A stretch of DNA of 43,051 bases, taken from positions 1 to 43,051 of the forward strand of contig NW_021835050.1 in assembly GCF_006345805.1 (NCBI RefSeq). Direction: 5' to 3'. Every line of letters starts with the position of its first letter. Within the stretch, counting starts at the first letter, position 1. The translations under genes and the position numbers were made by a program. Below are positions 13,258-38,013 of the stretch, piece after piece. The notes under the pieces were generated by a model. It was given only the letters and a program-made list of their open reading frames with translations. It did no database searches and had not been told where the DNA came from. Origin of the DNA: Octopus sinensis. Taxonomy: Eukaryota.

Positions 13258-13401
13258 AATACCAAACGAGTTCCCTATGGATACCGTATTTATTACAACG
13301 AGTGGCTTGTAAACGTATCTAACGAGCGAAAGCGAGTTAGATACGTTTACAAGCCACGAGTTGTAATAAATACGGTATCCATAGGGAATGAGTTTGGTAT
13401 T
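13258..13401. repeat. 144-bp near-perfect palindrome
   Basis: Arms 13258-13323 and 13336-13401, with apical GC-GAAA-GC and symmetric GA/GA internal mismatches. Confidence 0.95.
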
Positions 13402-13744
13402 TTATTTATTACACACGAATAAACGACCATATTTTATTAATCTAATAATTAAATTCTTCACATCATGTTGAAGCGCGCATGAATACAGTTTGATTTCACG
13501 TCAGTGACGTCACAATGTGTAACTGTAAAAGATGTCATGCCGCAGGAAGATAGTCCGACTTTATAGCGCTAAGTTTTCAGGTGAAATGACTGATAACTGA
13601 TGACTATTTAACATTTTGTTAACATTCAAGTTCACGTTCAAGAAATACATAACACAGGTTGAATATTCAATAACTTTAATAATACTCAAACATGTTTTCG
13701 AGTAGCAATGTCAGTCAGAGTAGAGCACAATAGTCCAGGAAAAC

Positions 13745-14059
13745 TTAACAGTCCTCATTATCTGTGAGACGAGGTCGCTTTGCATCTGAACCAAAGAAGT
13801 TCACATTGATTGTTCCCCCATATATTGGAGCCGAGAAAATGGAGTGCAATGAACCAAAGCAAGTGACAGCGTTCCGAGATTGACTCGACGTAACGTTGAC
13901 AGTGGAGGGGAGTTCACTTGCACTCGCTGCTGCTGTGTGTGACGGAGGTAGAAGCGAAACAGGCTGGTCGTTGTTACTACTAAGGATGTTACTGATGGCA
14001 CGATGACGATCCATGGAAATATTGCTGTAACTATTGATGCTTTGCACATTACGATGTCC
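13745..14059 (-). pseudogene. Last exon of a Crypton-type tyrosine recombinase (remnant)
   Basis: GHRNVQSINSYSNISMDRHRAISNILS matches the (T)GH..VQS...Y catalytic His/Tyr region. It ends FSAPIYGGTINVNF...KRPRL and is preceded by the acceptor ttttttttataccAG. Confidence 0.75.
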
Positions 14060-14504
14060 CTGGTATAAAAAAAAGATAGTATGTTTGTTTAATTACATGG
14101 CTACATTCTACCTGCTCGTGAAAGTTTAGTTGTAACTTATGAATGACAAAAGTAGTGCCGTCACCGTGACCTCGGGTCATCACCATGGATTGACCAATCA
14201 GAAGCAGCGCTCGCAGTATCTGACATATGTTAGATACCAAAAATATCTCAAAGTGTTCTCACTCACATGTGTGTAATAAATATATATATATATTTCAACA
14301 CGGAGCAAATTATTCATGAGAAAAATAATTCACGTCCAAAAACCTGAATGTATGCTGAGAGATTGTCTCAGTCCGTTTGCCTCCGGACGGTAGATTTCTG
14401 TAGTTATTATCAGTATATTTTGGCGATTTAAATGAGAGTTTTGATTGTTATTTCCAGCAGGTAGACATACTTAGTATGTCCTTTGATTAATTGTAATCCT
14501 TCAG

Positions 14505-14539
<35 letters not shown>

Positions 14540-14606
14540 TATATATATATATATATAATTATGCATATGTACATTTGTGTATGTACATACTTATCATCAT
14601 ACGTAA

Positions 14607-14658
<52 letters not shown>

Positions 14659-14730
14659 GGACACAGTACAAAGTACACACACTGAGTGGGCCGTGTGTCA
14701 ACCCCAATAGAGAAAATGAAGGTCTCCATA

Positions 14731-27139: not shown

Positions 27140-29261
27140 ATGGACGCATATCACATAGATTATTCTATGAAAAATATACCGATCCCATCAAAGGATTTTT
27201 ACTCTAAGAAACTTCTGCAAAAAATTACTGATGTAATTAAGCGTATGAGATGGAAGGCTTTCTTTTTTGATACAGAAGCGAACACCAAGGAAAACATTTG
27301 CTATCGGATAAAATCCAAAAAATTCCCTCCTAGGATTAAAGGCTTGGAAGATTTCGAAGCGGACCTGCTGAAGATCATGAGCAAAATAAAGTTTCGTAAG
27401 TCTTTTAACAATTTCCAACATAAATTGAAAAAAGATATTGATCATATAAAAAGCTCCAAGAAAAAAGCACTTTTTTCGGATAAAACCAAGAACTTATACC
27501 TGGTAGATAACAGCAAATACACACAACTCTTACACAACAGCATCATTAATAATTATACTAAGGCTAGGGCACAGACATATAACGAAATTAATAAAGAAGC
27601 TAGCGTCATCGCCGCTAAACTTAAATTAGATAAAAAATAGAAACCCTCCCCCAAAAAGAGGCCTTTATTACTATTAAAGACCACAAAGAAAACTTCCTTT
27701 CCAACCCTAAATGTAGGCTTATCAACCCAGCCAAGTCAGAACTAGGGATTATTAGCAAAGAAATTTTAGATAAAATAAATACGAAAATTAAGACCGATAC
27801 TAGGCTAGTGCAATGGTCCAATAGTATAGAAGTCGTAGACTGGTTTAAAGCTATTAAGAATAAGAAAAAGGCGAGGTTTACACAATTCGATATTGTTGAT
27901 TTTTATGCCTCTATCTCTAAAGAACTGCTAGATAAAGCCCTAATCTTCGCTAGTGACTTCATAGAAATTAGTACCAATGATAAGGATATAATCTTCCATG
28001 CTAGAAAGACATTACTTTTCAGTGAGAATGCAAAGTGGGTAAAAAACACCGACACGGAGGGCGCTTTCGATGTGAGCATGGGTTCATATGATGGGGCAGG
28101 CATCTGTGATCTAATTGGACTCTTTCTCCTAGATACCTTCGGTAAGACATTCCCTAACGTACATTTCGCCATCTACAAAGATGATGCCTCGCCTTAACAG
28201 CTAATACAAATGGACCAGCACAAGATCGTTTTAGGAAGGATATTATCCAGTTAATGAACACTTCGGACTTAGTATAACTATAGACACTAACCTGACGGTT
28301 GTCAATTTCTTAGACGTTTCCTTAGATCTTAATAATAATATTTATAAGCCTTATAGGAAGCCCAATGATAGACTAAGTTATATTAATGTAGGTTCATGCC
28401 ATCCCCCTATAGTATTCAAAAATTAGTTAAAAATATTAGTAAGAGGATTTCTAGCCTCTCATCTAATGAGGACATCTTCAATAGCGTTGCCCCAGTTTAT
28501 AATAAAGCTTTAAAAGATAGTGGTTTTAGCGAAAAAATAAAATATACACCTATCACCAGCCCAACAATAAGGAAAAGGAATAATAGAAATAGGAAGGTCA
28601 TCTGGTTTACGCCCCCTTACTCACCCGAGGTGGCCTTCAATATAGGTAAATATTTCCTAGCACTGATAGATAGACATTTTCCAGTTAACCATGCTTATAG
28701 GAAACTCTTTAATAGACACAATTTAAAAATTAGTTTTAGTTCAACTACCAATTTTAAAAACATAATCAATCATAACATACAAAAAACACAAGAAGAAAAC
28801 AGCTGTTCATGCAGGAATAAAGAATTGTGCCCGCTAAATGGAGCTTGCATGTCCAAGACCATCATATATGAAGCTACCGTAAACTCTATAACCACTAAAG
28901 ACACCGTTTCGACGAAGAAATACGTGGGCCTGACAGAGGGTAATTTCAAGGCCAGGTTCAATAACCACACTTTGAGCTTTAGGCACTGGAACAAAAGAAA
29001 AGCGACACAATTATCCAATCATATTTGGTCTTTAAGAGATAAGGTGTCGATTATAACATACAATGGAAGATTTTGGCCAGATGTAAGCCCTATACTAACG
29101 GCAGCGGAAGGTGCGGTTTATGCGACATGGAGAGATGGCTTATCTGGAAAAGCAGCTTAGACCCTACCACATGTCTAAATACAAGGACAGAGCTTTTCGG
29201 ATCATGCCCACATGTGACTAAATTTCTGTTACGTTTTTGGTCCCCTAAAGAAAACGGATAG
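27140..29261 (+). CDS. PLE polyprotein, RT plus C-terminal GIY-YIG endonuclease, about 700 aa after repairing five 1-bp deletions
   Basis: RT motifs FDIVDFYASI, MGSYDG and YKDD; NFLDVSLDL; WFTPPYS; CSC-x5-C-x5-C; IIYEA...YVGLT; CGLCDME; LNTRTE...CPH. Confidence 0.92.
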
Positions 29262-33362: not shown

Positions 33363-33637
33363 AGCAATAGCAACAGCATCAACATCAACATCATCAGCAT
33401 CAACATCATCATCGTCAGCATCACCATCATCATCGTCATCGTCGTTGTCATCTTTATGTTCCCCTCCTCTTCCTCCTCATCATCGTCATTATCATCATTA
33501 TCGTCGATATCGTCTTCGTCGTCGTTCGTAATAGGGTCGGATAACTAGCACATTGAGGCTAGTCTATACATATACACCAATAAATATATATATACACACA
33601 TACATATCACCTACATACAAATACATACATATATATA

Positions 33638-33706
<69 letters not shown>

Positions 33707-33834
33707 TATTGTATAGAGGGCATTATTACACATAAATGCCTCACACTAGGAGGGACAAAGTCATTACTACCAAAAATTATACTAATCATACCCAAATGCA
33801 GTTTTTCAAAGCAAGACATTTAAAAATGAATTAT

Positions 33835-33890
33835 GTTCTGTATCACCGTGATTTCACATACAACTTGCGTCTAATGATCGTCAGCAGAAC
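33835..33890 (-). ncRNA. Type I hammerhead ribozyme, family B
   Basis: Reverse complement of the motif at 35669-35724. Confidence 0.8.
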
Positions 33891-34313
33891 TGATTCTGAT
33901 ACATCATAAATAAACTACCAACCTTACGTAGCGGAGACGAACAGACAACTGCTCACTCCGGCCAAGCACATGGAATGTTTATAAATCATATATCCGGTAA
34001 ATGGCGGGCTTTTTACGAACTGCATGTCGGGTAATGAAAAGTATTTCGGAATAAGTTTAACAATTAAGGATAATCTCTTAATAAGGGATCTTAACAAGAA
34101 ATTATCGGGTAGCTAGCGTGAAAACCTCATAAAAGAAAAGAATCCGAAAATAATTTTTTTCTTTTGAACAAATTAATTATATCTATATTGTATAGAGGGC
34201 ATTATTACACATAAATGCCTCACACTAGGAGGGACAAAGTCATTACTACCAAAAATTATACTAATCATACCCAAATGCAGTTTTTCAAAGCAAGACATTT
34301 AAAAATGAATTAT

Positions 34314-34369
34314 GTTCTGTATCACCGTGATTTCACATACAACTTGCGTCTAATGATCGTCAGCAGAAC
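34314..34369 (-). ncRNA. Type I hammerhead ribozyme, family B
   Basis: Same motif. Confidence 0.8.
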
Positions 34370-34794
34370 TGATTCTGAATACATCATAAATAAACTACCA
34401 ACCTTACGTAGCGGAGACGAACAGACAACTGCTCACTCCGGCCAAGCACATGGAATGTTTATAAATCATATATCCGGTAAATGGCGGGCTTTTTACGAAC
34501 TGCATGTCGGGTAATGAAAAGTATTTCGGAATAAGTTTAACAATTAAGGATAATCTCTTAATAAGGGATCTTAACAAGAAATTATCGGGTAGCTAGCGTG
34601 AAAACCTCATAAAAGAAAAGAATCCGAAAATAATTTTTTTCTTTTGAACAAATTAATTATATCTATATTGTATAGAGGGCATTATTACACATAAATGCCT
34701 CACACTAGGAGGGACAAAGTCATTACTAACCAAAAATTATACTAATCATACCCAAATGCAGTTTTTCAAAGCAAGACATTTAAAAATGAATTAT

Positions 34795-34850
34795 GTTCTG
34801 TATCACCGTGATTTCACATACAACTTGCGTCTAATGATCGTCAGCAGAAC
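34795..34850 (-). ncRNA. Type I hammerhead ribozyme, family B
   Basis: Same motif. Confidence 0.8.
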
Positions 34851-35668
34851 TGATTCTGAATACATCATAAATAAACTACCAACCTTACGTAGCGGAGACG
34901 AACAGACAACTGCTCACTCCGGCCAAGCACATGGAATGTTTATAAATCATATATCCGGTAAATGGCGGGCTTTTTACGAACTGCATGTCGGGTAATGAAA
35001 AGTATTTCGGAATAAGTTTAACAATTAAGGATAATCTCTTAATAAGGGATCTTAACAAGAATTATCGGGTAGCTAGCGTGAAAACCTCATAAAAGAAAAG
35101 AATCCGAAAATAATTTTTTTCTTTTGAACAAATTAATTATATCTATATTGTATAGAGGGCATTATTACACATAAATGCCTCACACTAGGAGGGACAAAGT
35201 CATTACTACCAAAAATTATACTAATCATACCCAAATGCAGTTTTTCAAATGTTTTTAAATGTCTTGCTTTGAAAAACTGCATTTGGGTATGATTAGTATA
35301 ATTTTTGGTAGTAATGACTTTGTCCCTCCTAGTGTGAGGCATTTATGTGTAATAATGCCCTCTATACAATATAGATATAATTAATTTGTTCAAAAGAAAA
35401 AAAATTATTTTCGGATTCTTTTCTTTTATGAGGTTTTCACGCTAGCTACCCGATAATTTCTTGTTAAGATCCCTTATTAAGAGATTATCCTTAATTGTTA
35501 AACTTATTCCGAAATACTTTTCATTACCCGACATGCAGTTCGTAAAAAGCCCGCCATTTACCGGATATATGATTTATAAACATTCCATGTGCTTGGCCGG
35601 AGTGAGCAGTTGTCTGTTCGTCTCCGCTACGTAAGGTTGGTAGTTTATTTATGATGTATTCAGAATCA

Positions 35669-35724
35669 GTTCTGCTGACGATCATTAGACGCAAGTTGTA
35701 TGTGAAATCACGGTGATACAGAAC
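35669..35724 (+). ncRNA. Type I hammerhead ribozyme, family B
   Basis: GTTCTG-CTGACGA-T CAT ta GAC gcaa GTT gt ATG T-GAAA-TCAC g GTGA-TA-CAGAAC. Stem I is 6 bp perfect, stem III is near-palindromic, and AUA cleavage is predicted after 35718. Confidence 0.8.
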
Positions 35725-36146
35725 ATAATTCATTTTTAAATGTCTTGCTTTGAAAAACTGCATTTGGGTATGATTAGTATAATTTTTGGTAGTAATGACT
35801 TTGTCCCTCCTAGTGTGAGGCATTTATGTGTAATAATGCCCTCTATACAATATAGATATAATTAATTTGTTCAAAAGAAAAAAATTATTTTCGGATTCTT
35901 TTCTTTTATGAGGTTTTCACGCTAGCTACCCGATAATTTCTTGTTAAGATCCCTTATTAAGAGATTATCCTTAATTGTTAAACTTATTCCGAAATACTTT
36001 TCATTACCCGACATGCAGTTCGTAAAAAGCCCGCCATTTACCGGATATGATTTATAAACATTCCATGTGCTTGGCCGGAGTGAGCAGTTGTCTGTTCGTC
36101 TCCGCTACGTAAGGTTGGTAGTTTATTTATGATGTATTCAGAATCA

Positions 36147-36202
36147 GTTCTGCTGACGATCATTAGACGCAAGTTGTATGTGAAATCACGGTGATACAGA
36201 AC
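36147..36202 (+). ncRNA. Type I hammerhead ribozyme, family B
   Basis: Same motif. Confidence 0.8.
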
Positions 36203-36625
36203 ATAATTCATTTTTAAATGTCTTGCTTTGAAAAACTGCATTTGGGTATGATTAGTATAATTTTTGGTAGTAATGACTTTGTCCCTCCTAGTGTGAGGCA
36301 TTTATGTGTAATAATGCCCTCTATACAATATAGATATAATTAATTTGTTCAAAAGAAAAAAATTATTTTCGGATTCTTTTCTTTTATGAGGTTTTCACGC
36401 TAGCTACCCGATAATTTCTTGTTAAGATCCCTTATTAAGAGATTATCCTTAATTGTTAAACTTATTCCGAAATACTTTTCATTACCCGACATGCAGTTCG
36501 TAAAAAGCCGCCATTTACCGGATATATGATTTATAAACATTCCATGTGCTTGGCCGGAGTGAGCAGTTGTCTGTTCGTCTCCGCTACGTAAGGTTGGTAG
36601 TTTATTTATGATGTATTCAGAATCA

Positions 36626-36681
36626 GTTCTGCTGACGATCATTAGACGCAAGTTGTATGTGAAATCACGGTGATACAGAAC
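36626..36681 (+). ncRNA. Type I hammerhead ribozyme, family B
   Basis: Same motif. Confidence 0.8.
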
Positions 36682-36940
36682 ATAATTCATTTTTAATGTC
36701 TTGCTTTGAAAAACTGCATTTGGGTATGATTAGTATAATTTTTGGTAGTAATGACTTTGTCCCTCCTAGTGTGAGGCATTTATGTGTAATAATGCCCTCT
36801 ATACAATATAGATATAATTAATTTGTTCAAAAGAAAAAAATTATTTTCGGATTCTTTTCTTTTATGAGGTTTTCACGCTAGCTACCCGATAATTTCTTGT
36901 TAAGATCCCTTATTAAGAGATTATCCTTAATTGTTAAACT

Positions 36941-36975
<35 letters not shown>

Positions 36976-37022
36976 TTGTATGTAGGTGTATATGTATGTG
37001 TGTATATATATATTTATTGGTG

Positions 37023-37067
<45 letters not shown>

Positions 37068-38013
37068 TTGTATGTAGGTGTATATGTATGTGTGTATATA
37101 TATATATATTTATTGGTGTATATGTATAGACTAGCCTTCTAAGAGTGTAGACATGAATCTGTAGGTACGCGTACGTATGAGTATATACGTGAATGTATGT
37201 AGATGTATGTATTTATGAATATAACGCGTGCGTGCGTGTATGTGTATGAGTGTACGAATGAGTGAGTGTACGTGCTAATGAGTGTGCGTGCGTGAATGAG
37301 TGCTTGTTTTCAAGTAGACAGATAAATGGACTTGCTGTCATAGCCAAGATCCTTGGACCAGCGGTCAAAGATAACAAAAGTAATAAATGAAGATAATAAA
37401 ATTAAAATTAGGGAATGGGTCTGTATTTGTATGTATATATATGTGTGTATGTGTAGGTATGTATAGGTACACATATGTATATATATATATATATATAATG
37501 CCTTACCACATACCGAATTTAGAAGGGAGATCTCAGTAAAATGATAGATTGCAGTCAATTCATTCTCTCTTACCTGTTTGTGCCTTCCAAATGCTGTTTT
37601 TACTGAGATCTCCCTTTTTAGTAGAAGAAATAGCTATAACCCTTTGACTGCTATTTCTAAATTCGGTATGTGGTAAGGCAACTCGTTGCTAAACCCTTAT
37701 TGCTTAGTATTACTTAAATTTTCCTCGAATGAGGCTTTTACATGCCGAAGACTACTTGGTGTAATTGATAATTTTTCCAAATTAATTAATTTCACCCTTC
37801 ATTATTACGGATAACCATATTTTATCTCAGTAGATGACCACAGCATCTTGTTTTGGCTACACGCGGGTGGGAAGGGGCTGTTGACACAATCGTTTCATTC
37901 ACAAATTGAATTCGGTGATACCAGTTGCGGTTCTAGCTCGCTCTGATACTGAGTGGAGTTGGTGCCTTCTGGTATCTCAAAATTCAATATATAATCATTT
38001 ATGATTATAGTAT

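Follow-up and report, generated by a model that had tools for sequence, protein, structure and literature searches.

The 43,051-nt stretch of Octopus sinensis DNA analysed here (contig NW_021835050.1, positions 1 to 43,051 of the forward strand; hereafter the window) contains a block of about 1 kb whose two ends raise a question. An initial annotation, made from the sequence of the window, described this block as a Crypton-like element. It also pointed out that joining its ends extends a long hairpin situated at one of them, and proposed a circular intermediate for this reason. Which enzyme moves an element with such ends, and where in these ends are the strands exchanged? Comparison with further copies showed that positions 13254-14281 on the minus strand probably comprise the paired ends of a non-autonomous CryptonA-type DNA transposon, which would be mobilised by a tyrosine recombinase by way of a circle.

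The enzyme is indicated by the remainder of a coding region. The longest open reading frame (ORF) within the element extends from 14047 to 13745 on the minus strand. A Pfam scan of this remnant gave no match, as the remnant is too short, and exact-sequence look-ups of the window ORFs returned nothing on record. A full HMMER search with the window ORF yielded ten relatives, and the protein P0006 (497 aa) was the best of them. The remnant is identical to residues 419-497 of P0006 at 75 of 79 positions (95%). P0006 itself exceeds the curated Pfam cut-offs for DUF3504 (85.4 bits; cut-off 29.7), Phage_integrase (36.1; 27.1) and QRICH1 (31.3; 30.8), and the motifs HSAR (HxxR) and GHRNVQSINSY, the latter with the putative catalytic tyrosine, are visible in its sequence. 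The other HMMER matches carry the tyrosine-recombinase box NHSARKYLVQKL...ISGH.N.QSIN.YS. The only solved structure that is related to P0006 by sequence is that of QRICH1, a domesticated Crypton-derived protein. Together with the ends that the window element shares with the P0006 locus, these matches support the Crypton identity assigned initially.

P0006 is encoded at locus L009 on chromosome CM016870.1 of assembly GCA_006345805.1, which we take to be an assembly of Octopus sinensis. Positions 9647-12010 of this locus form a full-length element of about 2.36 kb, the autonomous form, with the same ends as the window element. The tyrosine recombinase, an intronless ORF of 497 aa, is the one gene called in this element, which is without reverse transcriptase, DDE transposase and Rep-helicase. 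The window copy corresponds to the L009 element minus 1,388 bp, which comprise most of the recombinase gene, and both ends were kept. What had been regarded as an exon is actually the remnant of the intronless ORF after this internal deletion. A poly-pyrimidine tract followed by CAG resembles a splice acceptor at this position, but the alignment with L009 places the deletion junction there.

The boundaries also follow from the comparison of copies. The sequences flanking the window copy and the L009 copy diverge at the element ends, which gives a true span of 13254-14281 in minus orientation, with the 5' end at 14281 and the 3' end at 13254. The span of 13258-14282 proposed initially was nearly right at both ends, being 4 nt short on the left and 1 nt long on the right. 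The other copies stop close to these coordinates, at most 4 nt away on the left and 1 nt on the right, and so do not refute the initial proposal. The window is eukaryotic in character, and the Crypton block of about 1 kb lies in it between two TA tracts. If the flanks are joined with the element taken out, an uninterrupted TA microsatellite is reconstituted as the empty site.

The 3' end of the element is dominated by a hairpin. Positions 13258-13401 fold as single-stranded DNA with -69.3 kcal/mol in comparison to -14.6 +/- 3.0 kcal/mol for shuffled sequences (z = -18), and none of 200 shuffles folded as well. A single base separates the hairpin from the inner inverted repeat, which reads TATTTATTACACAC in plus-strand letters at 13403-13416. 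Positions 14269-14282, which adjoin the right-hand TA tract, are a perfect 14-nt reverse complement of this repeat. With one mismatch allowed, copies of the 14-mer occur in the 43 kb only at these two places (13403-13416 on the minus strand and 14269-14282 on the plus strand), the chance expectation being about 0.13. The observation that had drawn attention to the locus holds: one extra A is all that distinguishes the joined string, GTGTGTAATAAATA followed by AATACCAAAC, from the reverse complement of 13392-13416. The folding energy of the first 122 nt at the 5' end does not stand out from that of shuffled sequences (z = -0.68). Helitron2 elements have a 5' terminal hairpin that overlaps their 5' repeat; such a hairpin was considered for the window element but is unsupported.

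Relatives of the hairpin were sought in metagenome contigs with a 20-mer from the hairpin tip. True relatives were obtained in three contigs (L001, L002 and L004), with 76-80% identity over the hairpin. Five further matches (L003 and L005-L008; four metagenome contigs and one bacterial genome) have only a 20-22-mer in common with the hairpin and were rejected as unrelated, and the same 20-mer found no match among viral contigs. All ends were compared in gene orientation, comprising 11 3' ends and eight 5' ends. L004, which could not be assigned an orientation with confidence, does not appear in the end tables. The L004 hairpin (positions 340-512) bears mixed orientation marks, the CTCG motif pointing one way and the terminal CTCT/AGAG the other, and could be a flipped palindrome; it adjoins a putative cadherin-type exon, as judged by eye.

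Joining the ends lengthens the hairpin stem by 13-15 bp. When the true ends of the window element are joined, one extended stem is formed (-79.2 kcal/mol compared to -68.0 kcal/mol without the outer repeat), and three other family members with different repeats behaved likewise (-64.9 and -56.6, -72.1 and -57.9, -72.2 and -57.8 kcal/mol, joined and without the outer repeat, respectively). Joining the true ends thus gained 8-15 kcal/mol in four of four elements, with a bulge of 2-4 nt at or beside the joint. In the window element the terminal tetranucleotide GTCT forms this bulge, which is unpaired or partly paired. The repeat pairs differ among the elements, yet they are complementary within each of them (GTGTGTAATAAAT, GTGTAAGAAATAT and ATGTGATAAAT for the window, L002 b and L001 Y, respectively). 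Covariation within the hairpin is strong: 22 of 64 pairs are changed on both sides, compared to 7.8 +/- 2.0 in shuffles and 2-6 with slid partners, and in a more divergent set of hairpins 36 of 75 pairs are changed in this manner.

These data bear directly on whether the block is one element at all. It might consist of two unrelated neighbours, a foldback element or MITE (a miniature transposable element with inverted repeats) at 13258-13401 and an 880-bp element at 13403-14282 with terminal inverted repeats of 12-14 bp and a TA duplication. The sequence TTTATTACACAC...GTGTGTAATAAA with TA on either side can be read as a Tc1/mariner-like MITE, for which (TA)n is a hot target. However, several unrelated loci (L009, L002 b, L001 Z and Y, L012 B) show the same combination of a repeat at the far end with a near repeat that adjoins the hairpin, and the repeats co-vary. 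Element b of L002 resembles the window element in the hairpin and in about 150 bp at the far end (146 bp in the window), whereas the middle differs, so that the hairpin and the far repeat are to be regarded as one unit. The symmetry of a Tc1/mariner-type MITE is also missing, as one repeat sits behind the hairpin, 148 nt into the element. Two independent neighbours are hence hardly credible as an explanation.

The hairpin is linked not only to the far repeat but also to the recombinase gene. A long hairpin was present 3' of the recombinase in all five loci with enough downstream DNA (L009, L012, L014, L015 and L016), 390-670 nt past the stop codon and with arms of 49-74 nt (56-74 nt outside L009); L010, L011 and L013 are too short to judge its presence. 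The loci of six more distant relatives, outside octopus, were retrieved for this comparison; over the C-terminal part of the protein, the identity of their recombinases is only 36-45%. The L015 sequence originates from assembly GCA_020536995.1, presumably that of the zebra mussel. A miniature of 287 bp at L012 (9,441-9,727) has nothing but the hairpin and the two repeats (5' and inner) and, judged by this composition, is the putative minimal cis-acting unit. The order of recombinase and hairpin is conserved, and derivatives that lack the gene have kept the hairpin. Both findings speak for a recombinase that belongs to the element itself and for a hairpin that acts in cis.

The position of the hairpin behind a gene would also be consistent with a role chiefly at the RNA level or in regulation, as a structure in the 3' untranslated region of the recombinase transcript or as a terminator, the match to the other end then being incidental to recombination. 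In every locus the hairpin lies in sense orientation 330-670 nt after the stop codon. This explanation is nevertheless improbable: the hairpin is terminal in the transposon, with only 4 nt between it and the boundary; it was kept in the gene-less window copy and in the 287-bp miniature; and in an mRNA that begins inside the element, a repeat that is complementary to the far end serves no purpose. A scan for sigma-70 promoters and terminators showed no enrichment and is irrelevant to a eukaryote.

The crossover can be narrowed down from the ends themselves. All of the 11 3' ends finish with TCT, which is followed by AT(A/T/G)T(A/T)(T/G), a hexamer with a background frequency of 1-4% per position. 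The 5' ends open with AT(T/A)(T/C)(T/A)T (ATTTAT, ATACTT or ATATTT) in seven of eight cases with unrelated flanks, and the eighth (L012_B) reads ATTTTAT with one extra T. The 3' flank always opens with an ATWTAT-type hexamer, which repeats the hexamer at the start of the element itself. Five of the 5' ends are free, and the flanking base directly before them is T in four cases and G in L009; each of the remaining three adjoins another element. Short terminal direct repeats, a mark of Cryptons, are present at both boundaries, and the two copies are often imperfect. In Cryptons, bounding direct repeats of 4-6 bp, regarded as the recombination substrates, are the only terminal mark that has been described, and movement is reported to proceed via a circle (PMC3212892). 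The short terminal direct repeat is likely to be the crossover in this element too, which makes a (TA)n tract a natural target. The hexamers at the 5' ends lie inside the outer repeat, in agreement with the proposal that the crossover is located in the outer hairpin arm and that TA-rich DNA is the target.

Joined ends were also encountered in genomic sequence. L001 (elements X, Y and Z) and L002 (a and b) contain head-to-tail chains of different family members, all in one orientation, and the hairpin is half-deleted in some of the chain members. At the joints exactly one hexamer is common to both elements, and two joints share a single ATTTAT. This head-to-tail arrangement with one hexamer is as expected if a circle integrates into the terminal site of a resident copy, and the predicted joined-end sequence is present at these genomic joints.

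According to the mechanism proposed here, the recombinase would exchange strands within the hexamer and release the element as a circle with the predicted junction ...GGTATTGTCT-ATTTATTACACAC. Within the circle the two repeats would flank the hairpin and form one palindrome of about 175 nt with it; the crossover hexamer would then lie in the outer arm of this palindrome, beside the 4-nt GTCT bulge. The circle might insert at any ATWTAT-like site, many of which are supplied by a (TA)n microsatellite. The hairpin and the repeats would serve as the cis-acting site required by the recombinase, which full-length copies would provide in trans.

The hairpin itself has further conserved properties. 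On the plus strand its tip (13326-13333) reads GCGAAAGC, a sequence known to form a DNA mini-hairpin of exceptional stability that contains a sheared G.A pair (PMC13037366). Three symmetric mismatch sites, CGAG/CGAG on the plus strand, were found in the stem (13267-70/13389-92, 13299-302/13357-60 and 13323-26/13333-36). At these three stem sites both arms carry the identical tetranucleotide, which is unable to pair, throughout the subfamily formed by the octopus, L002 and L004 hairpins; the sites represent tandem G.A pairs on the plus strand and CTCG/CTCG on the element strand. In more distant relatives the tip keeps the motif CTYG-N6-8-CTYG, and some stem sites are fully paired. The stem mismatches and the tip motif might serve for the binding of proteins or mark the structure of a folded substrate. 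No candidate resulted when the open frame of the hairpin was translated and used in a protein search.

Long imperfect hairpins with conserved unpaired bases near the crossover are recognised by tyrosine recombinases in the integron attC site and in the attP site of the CTX phage with XerCD. It is conceivable, although rather unlikely, that the recombinase of the octopus Crypton clade likewise recognises a folded site, either a cruciform extruded from the circle or the single-stranded hairpin. By analogy, the 4-nt bulge by the hexamer, the CTCG/CTCG mismatches and the CTYG-N6-8-CTYG tip could position or orient the cleavage, like the extrahelical bases of attC. The attC and attP sites are bacterial, and use of the Crypton site in a folded form is conjecture. 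If true, recognition of a folded site would be the first case of a structure-specific recombination site for a eukaryotic tyrosine-recombinase transposon.

The anatomy of the ends is otherwise known from a different class of transposons. Helitron2/Helentron elements and the non-autonomous HINE/DINE-1 elements carry a 5' repeat at a distance of 0-2 bp from the tip, together with an 8-16-nt 3' repeat directly before a 3' hairpin, and pairing of the two repeats was proposed to mark the end of rolling-circle replication (PMC3627910, PMC4067079, PMC11417382). The octopus element matches this layout exactly and shares the end geometry, the extension of the hairpin by joined ends, the AT-rich targets and the head-to-tail copies, since such arrays are known for Helitrons too. 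A non-autonomous Helitron2/Helentron rolling-circle element with a captured recombinase fragment, moved by a Rep-helicase through a single-stranded circle, was therefore the first hypothesis. The anatomy fits, but the hypothesis fails on the encoded enzyme: the full-length copy with the same ends measures only about 2.36 kb, and its single gene codes for a tyrosine recombinase instead of a Rep-helicase. A recombinase followed by a hairpin in five loci of different genomes is also not expected of a passenger gene. The element inserts at N|ATWTAT with a terminal direct repeat, compared to T|T without repeats in Helitron2, and its hairpin of 144 nt is several times longer than the 5-10-bp palindromes of Helitron2/HINE elements, whose 3' terminal segments measure roughly 20-60 nt. 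A Helitron2 origin is thus very improbable and was dropped, because the autonomous copy encodes a tyrosine recombinase; the likeness to Helitron2 is convergence or that of a look-alike, not membership.

A CryptonA-type transposon, which is the reading preferred here, accounts for the enzyme. Like CryptonA, the octopus element has a lone tyrosine-recombinase gene (DUF3504, Phage_integrase) and no other enzyme, a small size, abundant non-autonomous deletion derivatives and short direct repeats at both boundaries. Unlike the CryptonA elements described so far, the octopus clade has an asymmetric inverted repeat of 13-14 nt and a terminal hairpin of about 110-160 nt. Cryptons are described as being without terminal inverted repeats, and those of animals are stated to have yielded no terminal repeats (Kojima & Jurka 2011, PMC3212892; Glomhopper paper 2026, PMC13465315). 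As the enzyme defines the superfamily, the inverted repeats are to be regarded as a variant of CryptonA and not as grounds for exclusion. A full-text literature search for Crypton together with hairpin, in which Repbase entries were not covered, found no description of such an end structure. The ends with hairpin and inverted repeats are therefore regarded as a new feature within CryptonA-type transposons, and the resemblance to Helitron2 is anatomical only.

DIRS-type retrotransposons, which have inverted terminal repeats and a tyrosine recombinase, are similar in being recombinase elements in which an internal sequence complementary to the ends set side by side is present. The role proposed for this internal complementary region (ICR) is to align the ends for formation of a closed circle. 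The region is mentioned in PMC13465315. Unlike DIRS, the octopus element has a single recombinase ORF in 2.36 kb and neither reverse transcriptase nor RNase H, and its complementary segment is an arm of the terminal hairpin instead of an internal block.

Several points weigh against the assignment and the mechanism. The circle and the position of the crossover were deduced from the ends: neither a circle junction was read nor an empty site seen. Within one element, the two terminal hexamers frequently differ from each other (ATTTAT and ATATAT in the window), and classical tyrosine recombinases require identical overlap regions. The difference between the two hexamers suggests that mismatched overlaps are tolerated, as in the Tn916 family. 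This family combines a tyrosine recombinase with a circular intermediate and AT-rich targets, and its 6-bp staggered cuts tolerate non-identical overlaps; unlike the octopus element, its members are bacterial, large and without a terminal hairpin. Repair or gene conversion can homogenise the arms of a palindrome, so that the compensatory changes alone fall short of proving selection on pairing. The sample comprised only about 11 elements from 8 loci. Furthermore, the sole full-length copy seen, at L009, is damaged. A TAT-to-TAA change creates a stop 25 codons before the natural end (11,480-11,495), and 48 nt are deleted in the hairpin tip (11,957-11,966). Going by these lesions, L009 is probably not the active source copy. 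The hairpin of the window copy is complete, and its tip matches those of L002, L004 and L012. The coordinates of the features are compiled in the table.

Table. Features of the CryptonA-type element in the window and of its flanks (positions refer to the window unless stated otherwise; minus is the element strand)
Feature	Position	Strand	Description or basis
Whole element	13254..14281	-	1,028-bp non-autonomous deletion derivative, probably of a CryptonA-type transposon of about 2.36 kb; blastn to L009
5' terminal hexamer ATTTAT	14276..14281	-	copy of the terminal direct repeat; proposed crossover core; inside outer repeat
Outer (5'-terminal) inverted repeat ATTTATTACACAC (element strand)	14269..14281	-	14-mer of the initial annotation adds 14282
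5' non-coding region	14060..14268	-	99% identical to L009 9647-9866; holds 22-nt imperfect palindrome 14216-14237 (self-match)
Internal deletion junction	14059..14060	-	1,388 bp of the autonomous element gone (L009 9867-11254)
Tyrosine-recombinase ORF remnant	13745..14059	-	last 104 codons and stop; begins GHRNVQSINSYS with putative catalytic Tyr
3' non-coding region, stop codon to inner repeat	13417..13744	-	97% identical to L009
Inner inverted repeat GTGTGTAATAAATA (element strand)	13403..13416	-	one base upstream of hairpin
3'-terminal hairpin, 144 nt	13258..13401	-	fold and covariation
3'-terminal tetranucleotide GTCT (element strand; AGAC on plus strand)	13254..13257	-	CTCT in most relatives
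Hexamer ATATAT outside 3' end	13248..13253	-	terminal direct repeat, second copy; either derived from the target or a shared core
(TA)n flank, left side	13241..13253	.	sequence
(AT)n flank, right side	14282..14294	.	sequence, flank print-out
Aligned segment 1	element nt 1-222		L009 9647-9866, 99% identity, blastn
Aligned segment 2	element nt 223-935		L009 11255-11971, 97% identity, blastn
Aligned segment 3	element nt 984-1028		L009 11966-12010, 100% identity, blastn

Palindromes of the TGACGTCA type, which resemble the cAMP response element (CRE), were detected in the window at 13494-13515 and recur in the non-coding bodies of the L001 and L002 elements. These CRE-like palindromes may be promoter sites or sites for host factors.

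The remainder of the window is characterised by an exceptional density of microsatellites, comprising (TA)n, (TGTA)n, (GATA)n and trinucleotide runs (e.g. 1,446-1,900; 4,920-5,100; 8,480-9,600; 14,500-14,660), and most of the long ORFs of the window are translated microsatellite repeats. On the plus strand, three consecutive ORFs of a degenerate mobile element were identified at 27,140-29,160. The last of them showed a weak match to the GIY-YIG nuclease (E = 0.009, below the cut-off) and has unnamed homologues with 39-46% identity in ENA metagenome data. A unit of about 480 bp occupies the region 33,560-37,130, with 3.2 copies in forward orientation (33,700-35,249) followed by 3.5 inverted copies (35,252-36,943). 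The arms of this repeat are 98-100% identical, and the flanking microsatellite-like DNA is likewise inverted; this may be a giant palindrome or, alternatively, an artefact of the assembly. A 19-nt match (89%) to the hairpin foot and the inner repeat was found within the 480-bp repeat at 33,906-33,924, together with five further sites. No palindrome adjoins these matches, which are probably due to chance and were not considered as related.

Several animal genes are derived from Cryptons, among them ZMYM2-4, QRICH1, KCTD1 and KIAA1958. To our knowledge, the ends of Cryptons have been poorly defined, and their mechanism has never been demonstrated. In the octopus clade the element has precise boundaries, one hexamer is a candidate for the crossover, and a large cis structure is conserved. 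Natural miniatures and a near-intact recombinase gene are available as well, and the circle model is therefore directly testable in this clade. The structure of the element also provides a signature by which such elements can be annotated. As this signature would at present be taken for that of Helitron2, programs that search for Helitrons by terminal repeats and a 3' hairpin may mislabel these Cryptons in mollusc genomes.
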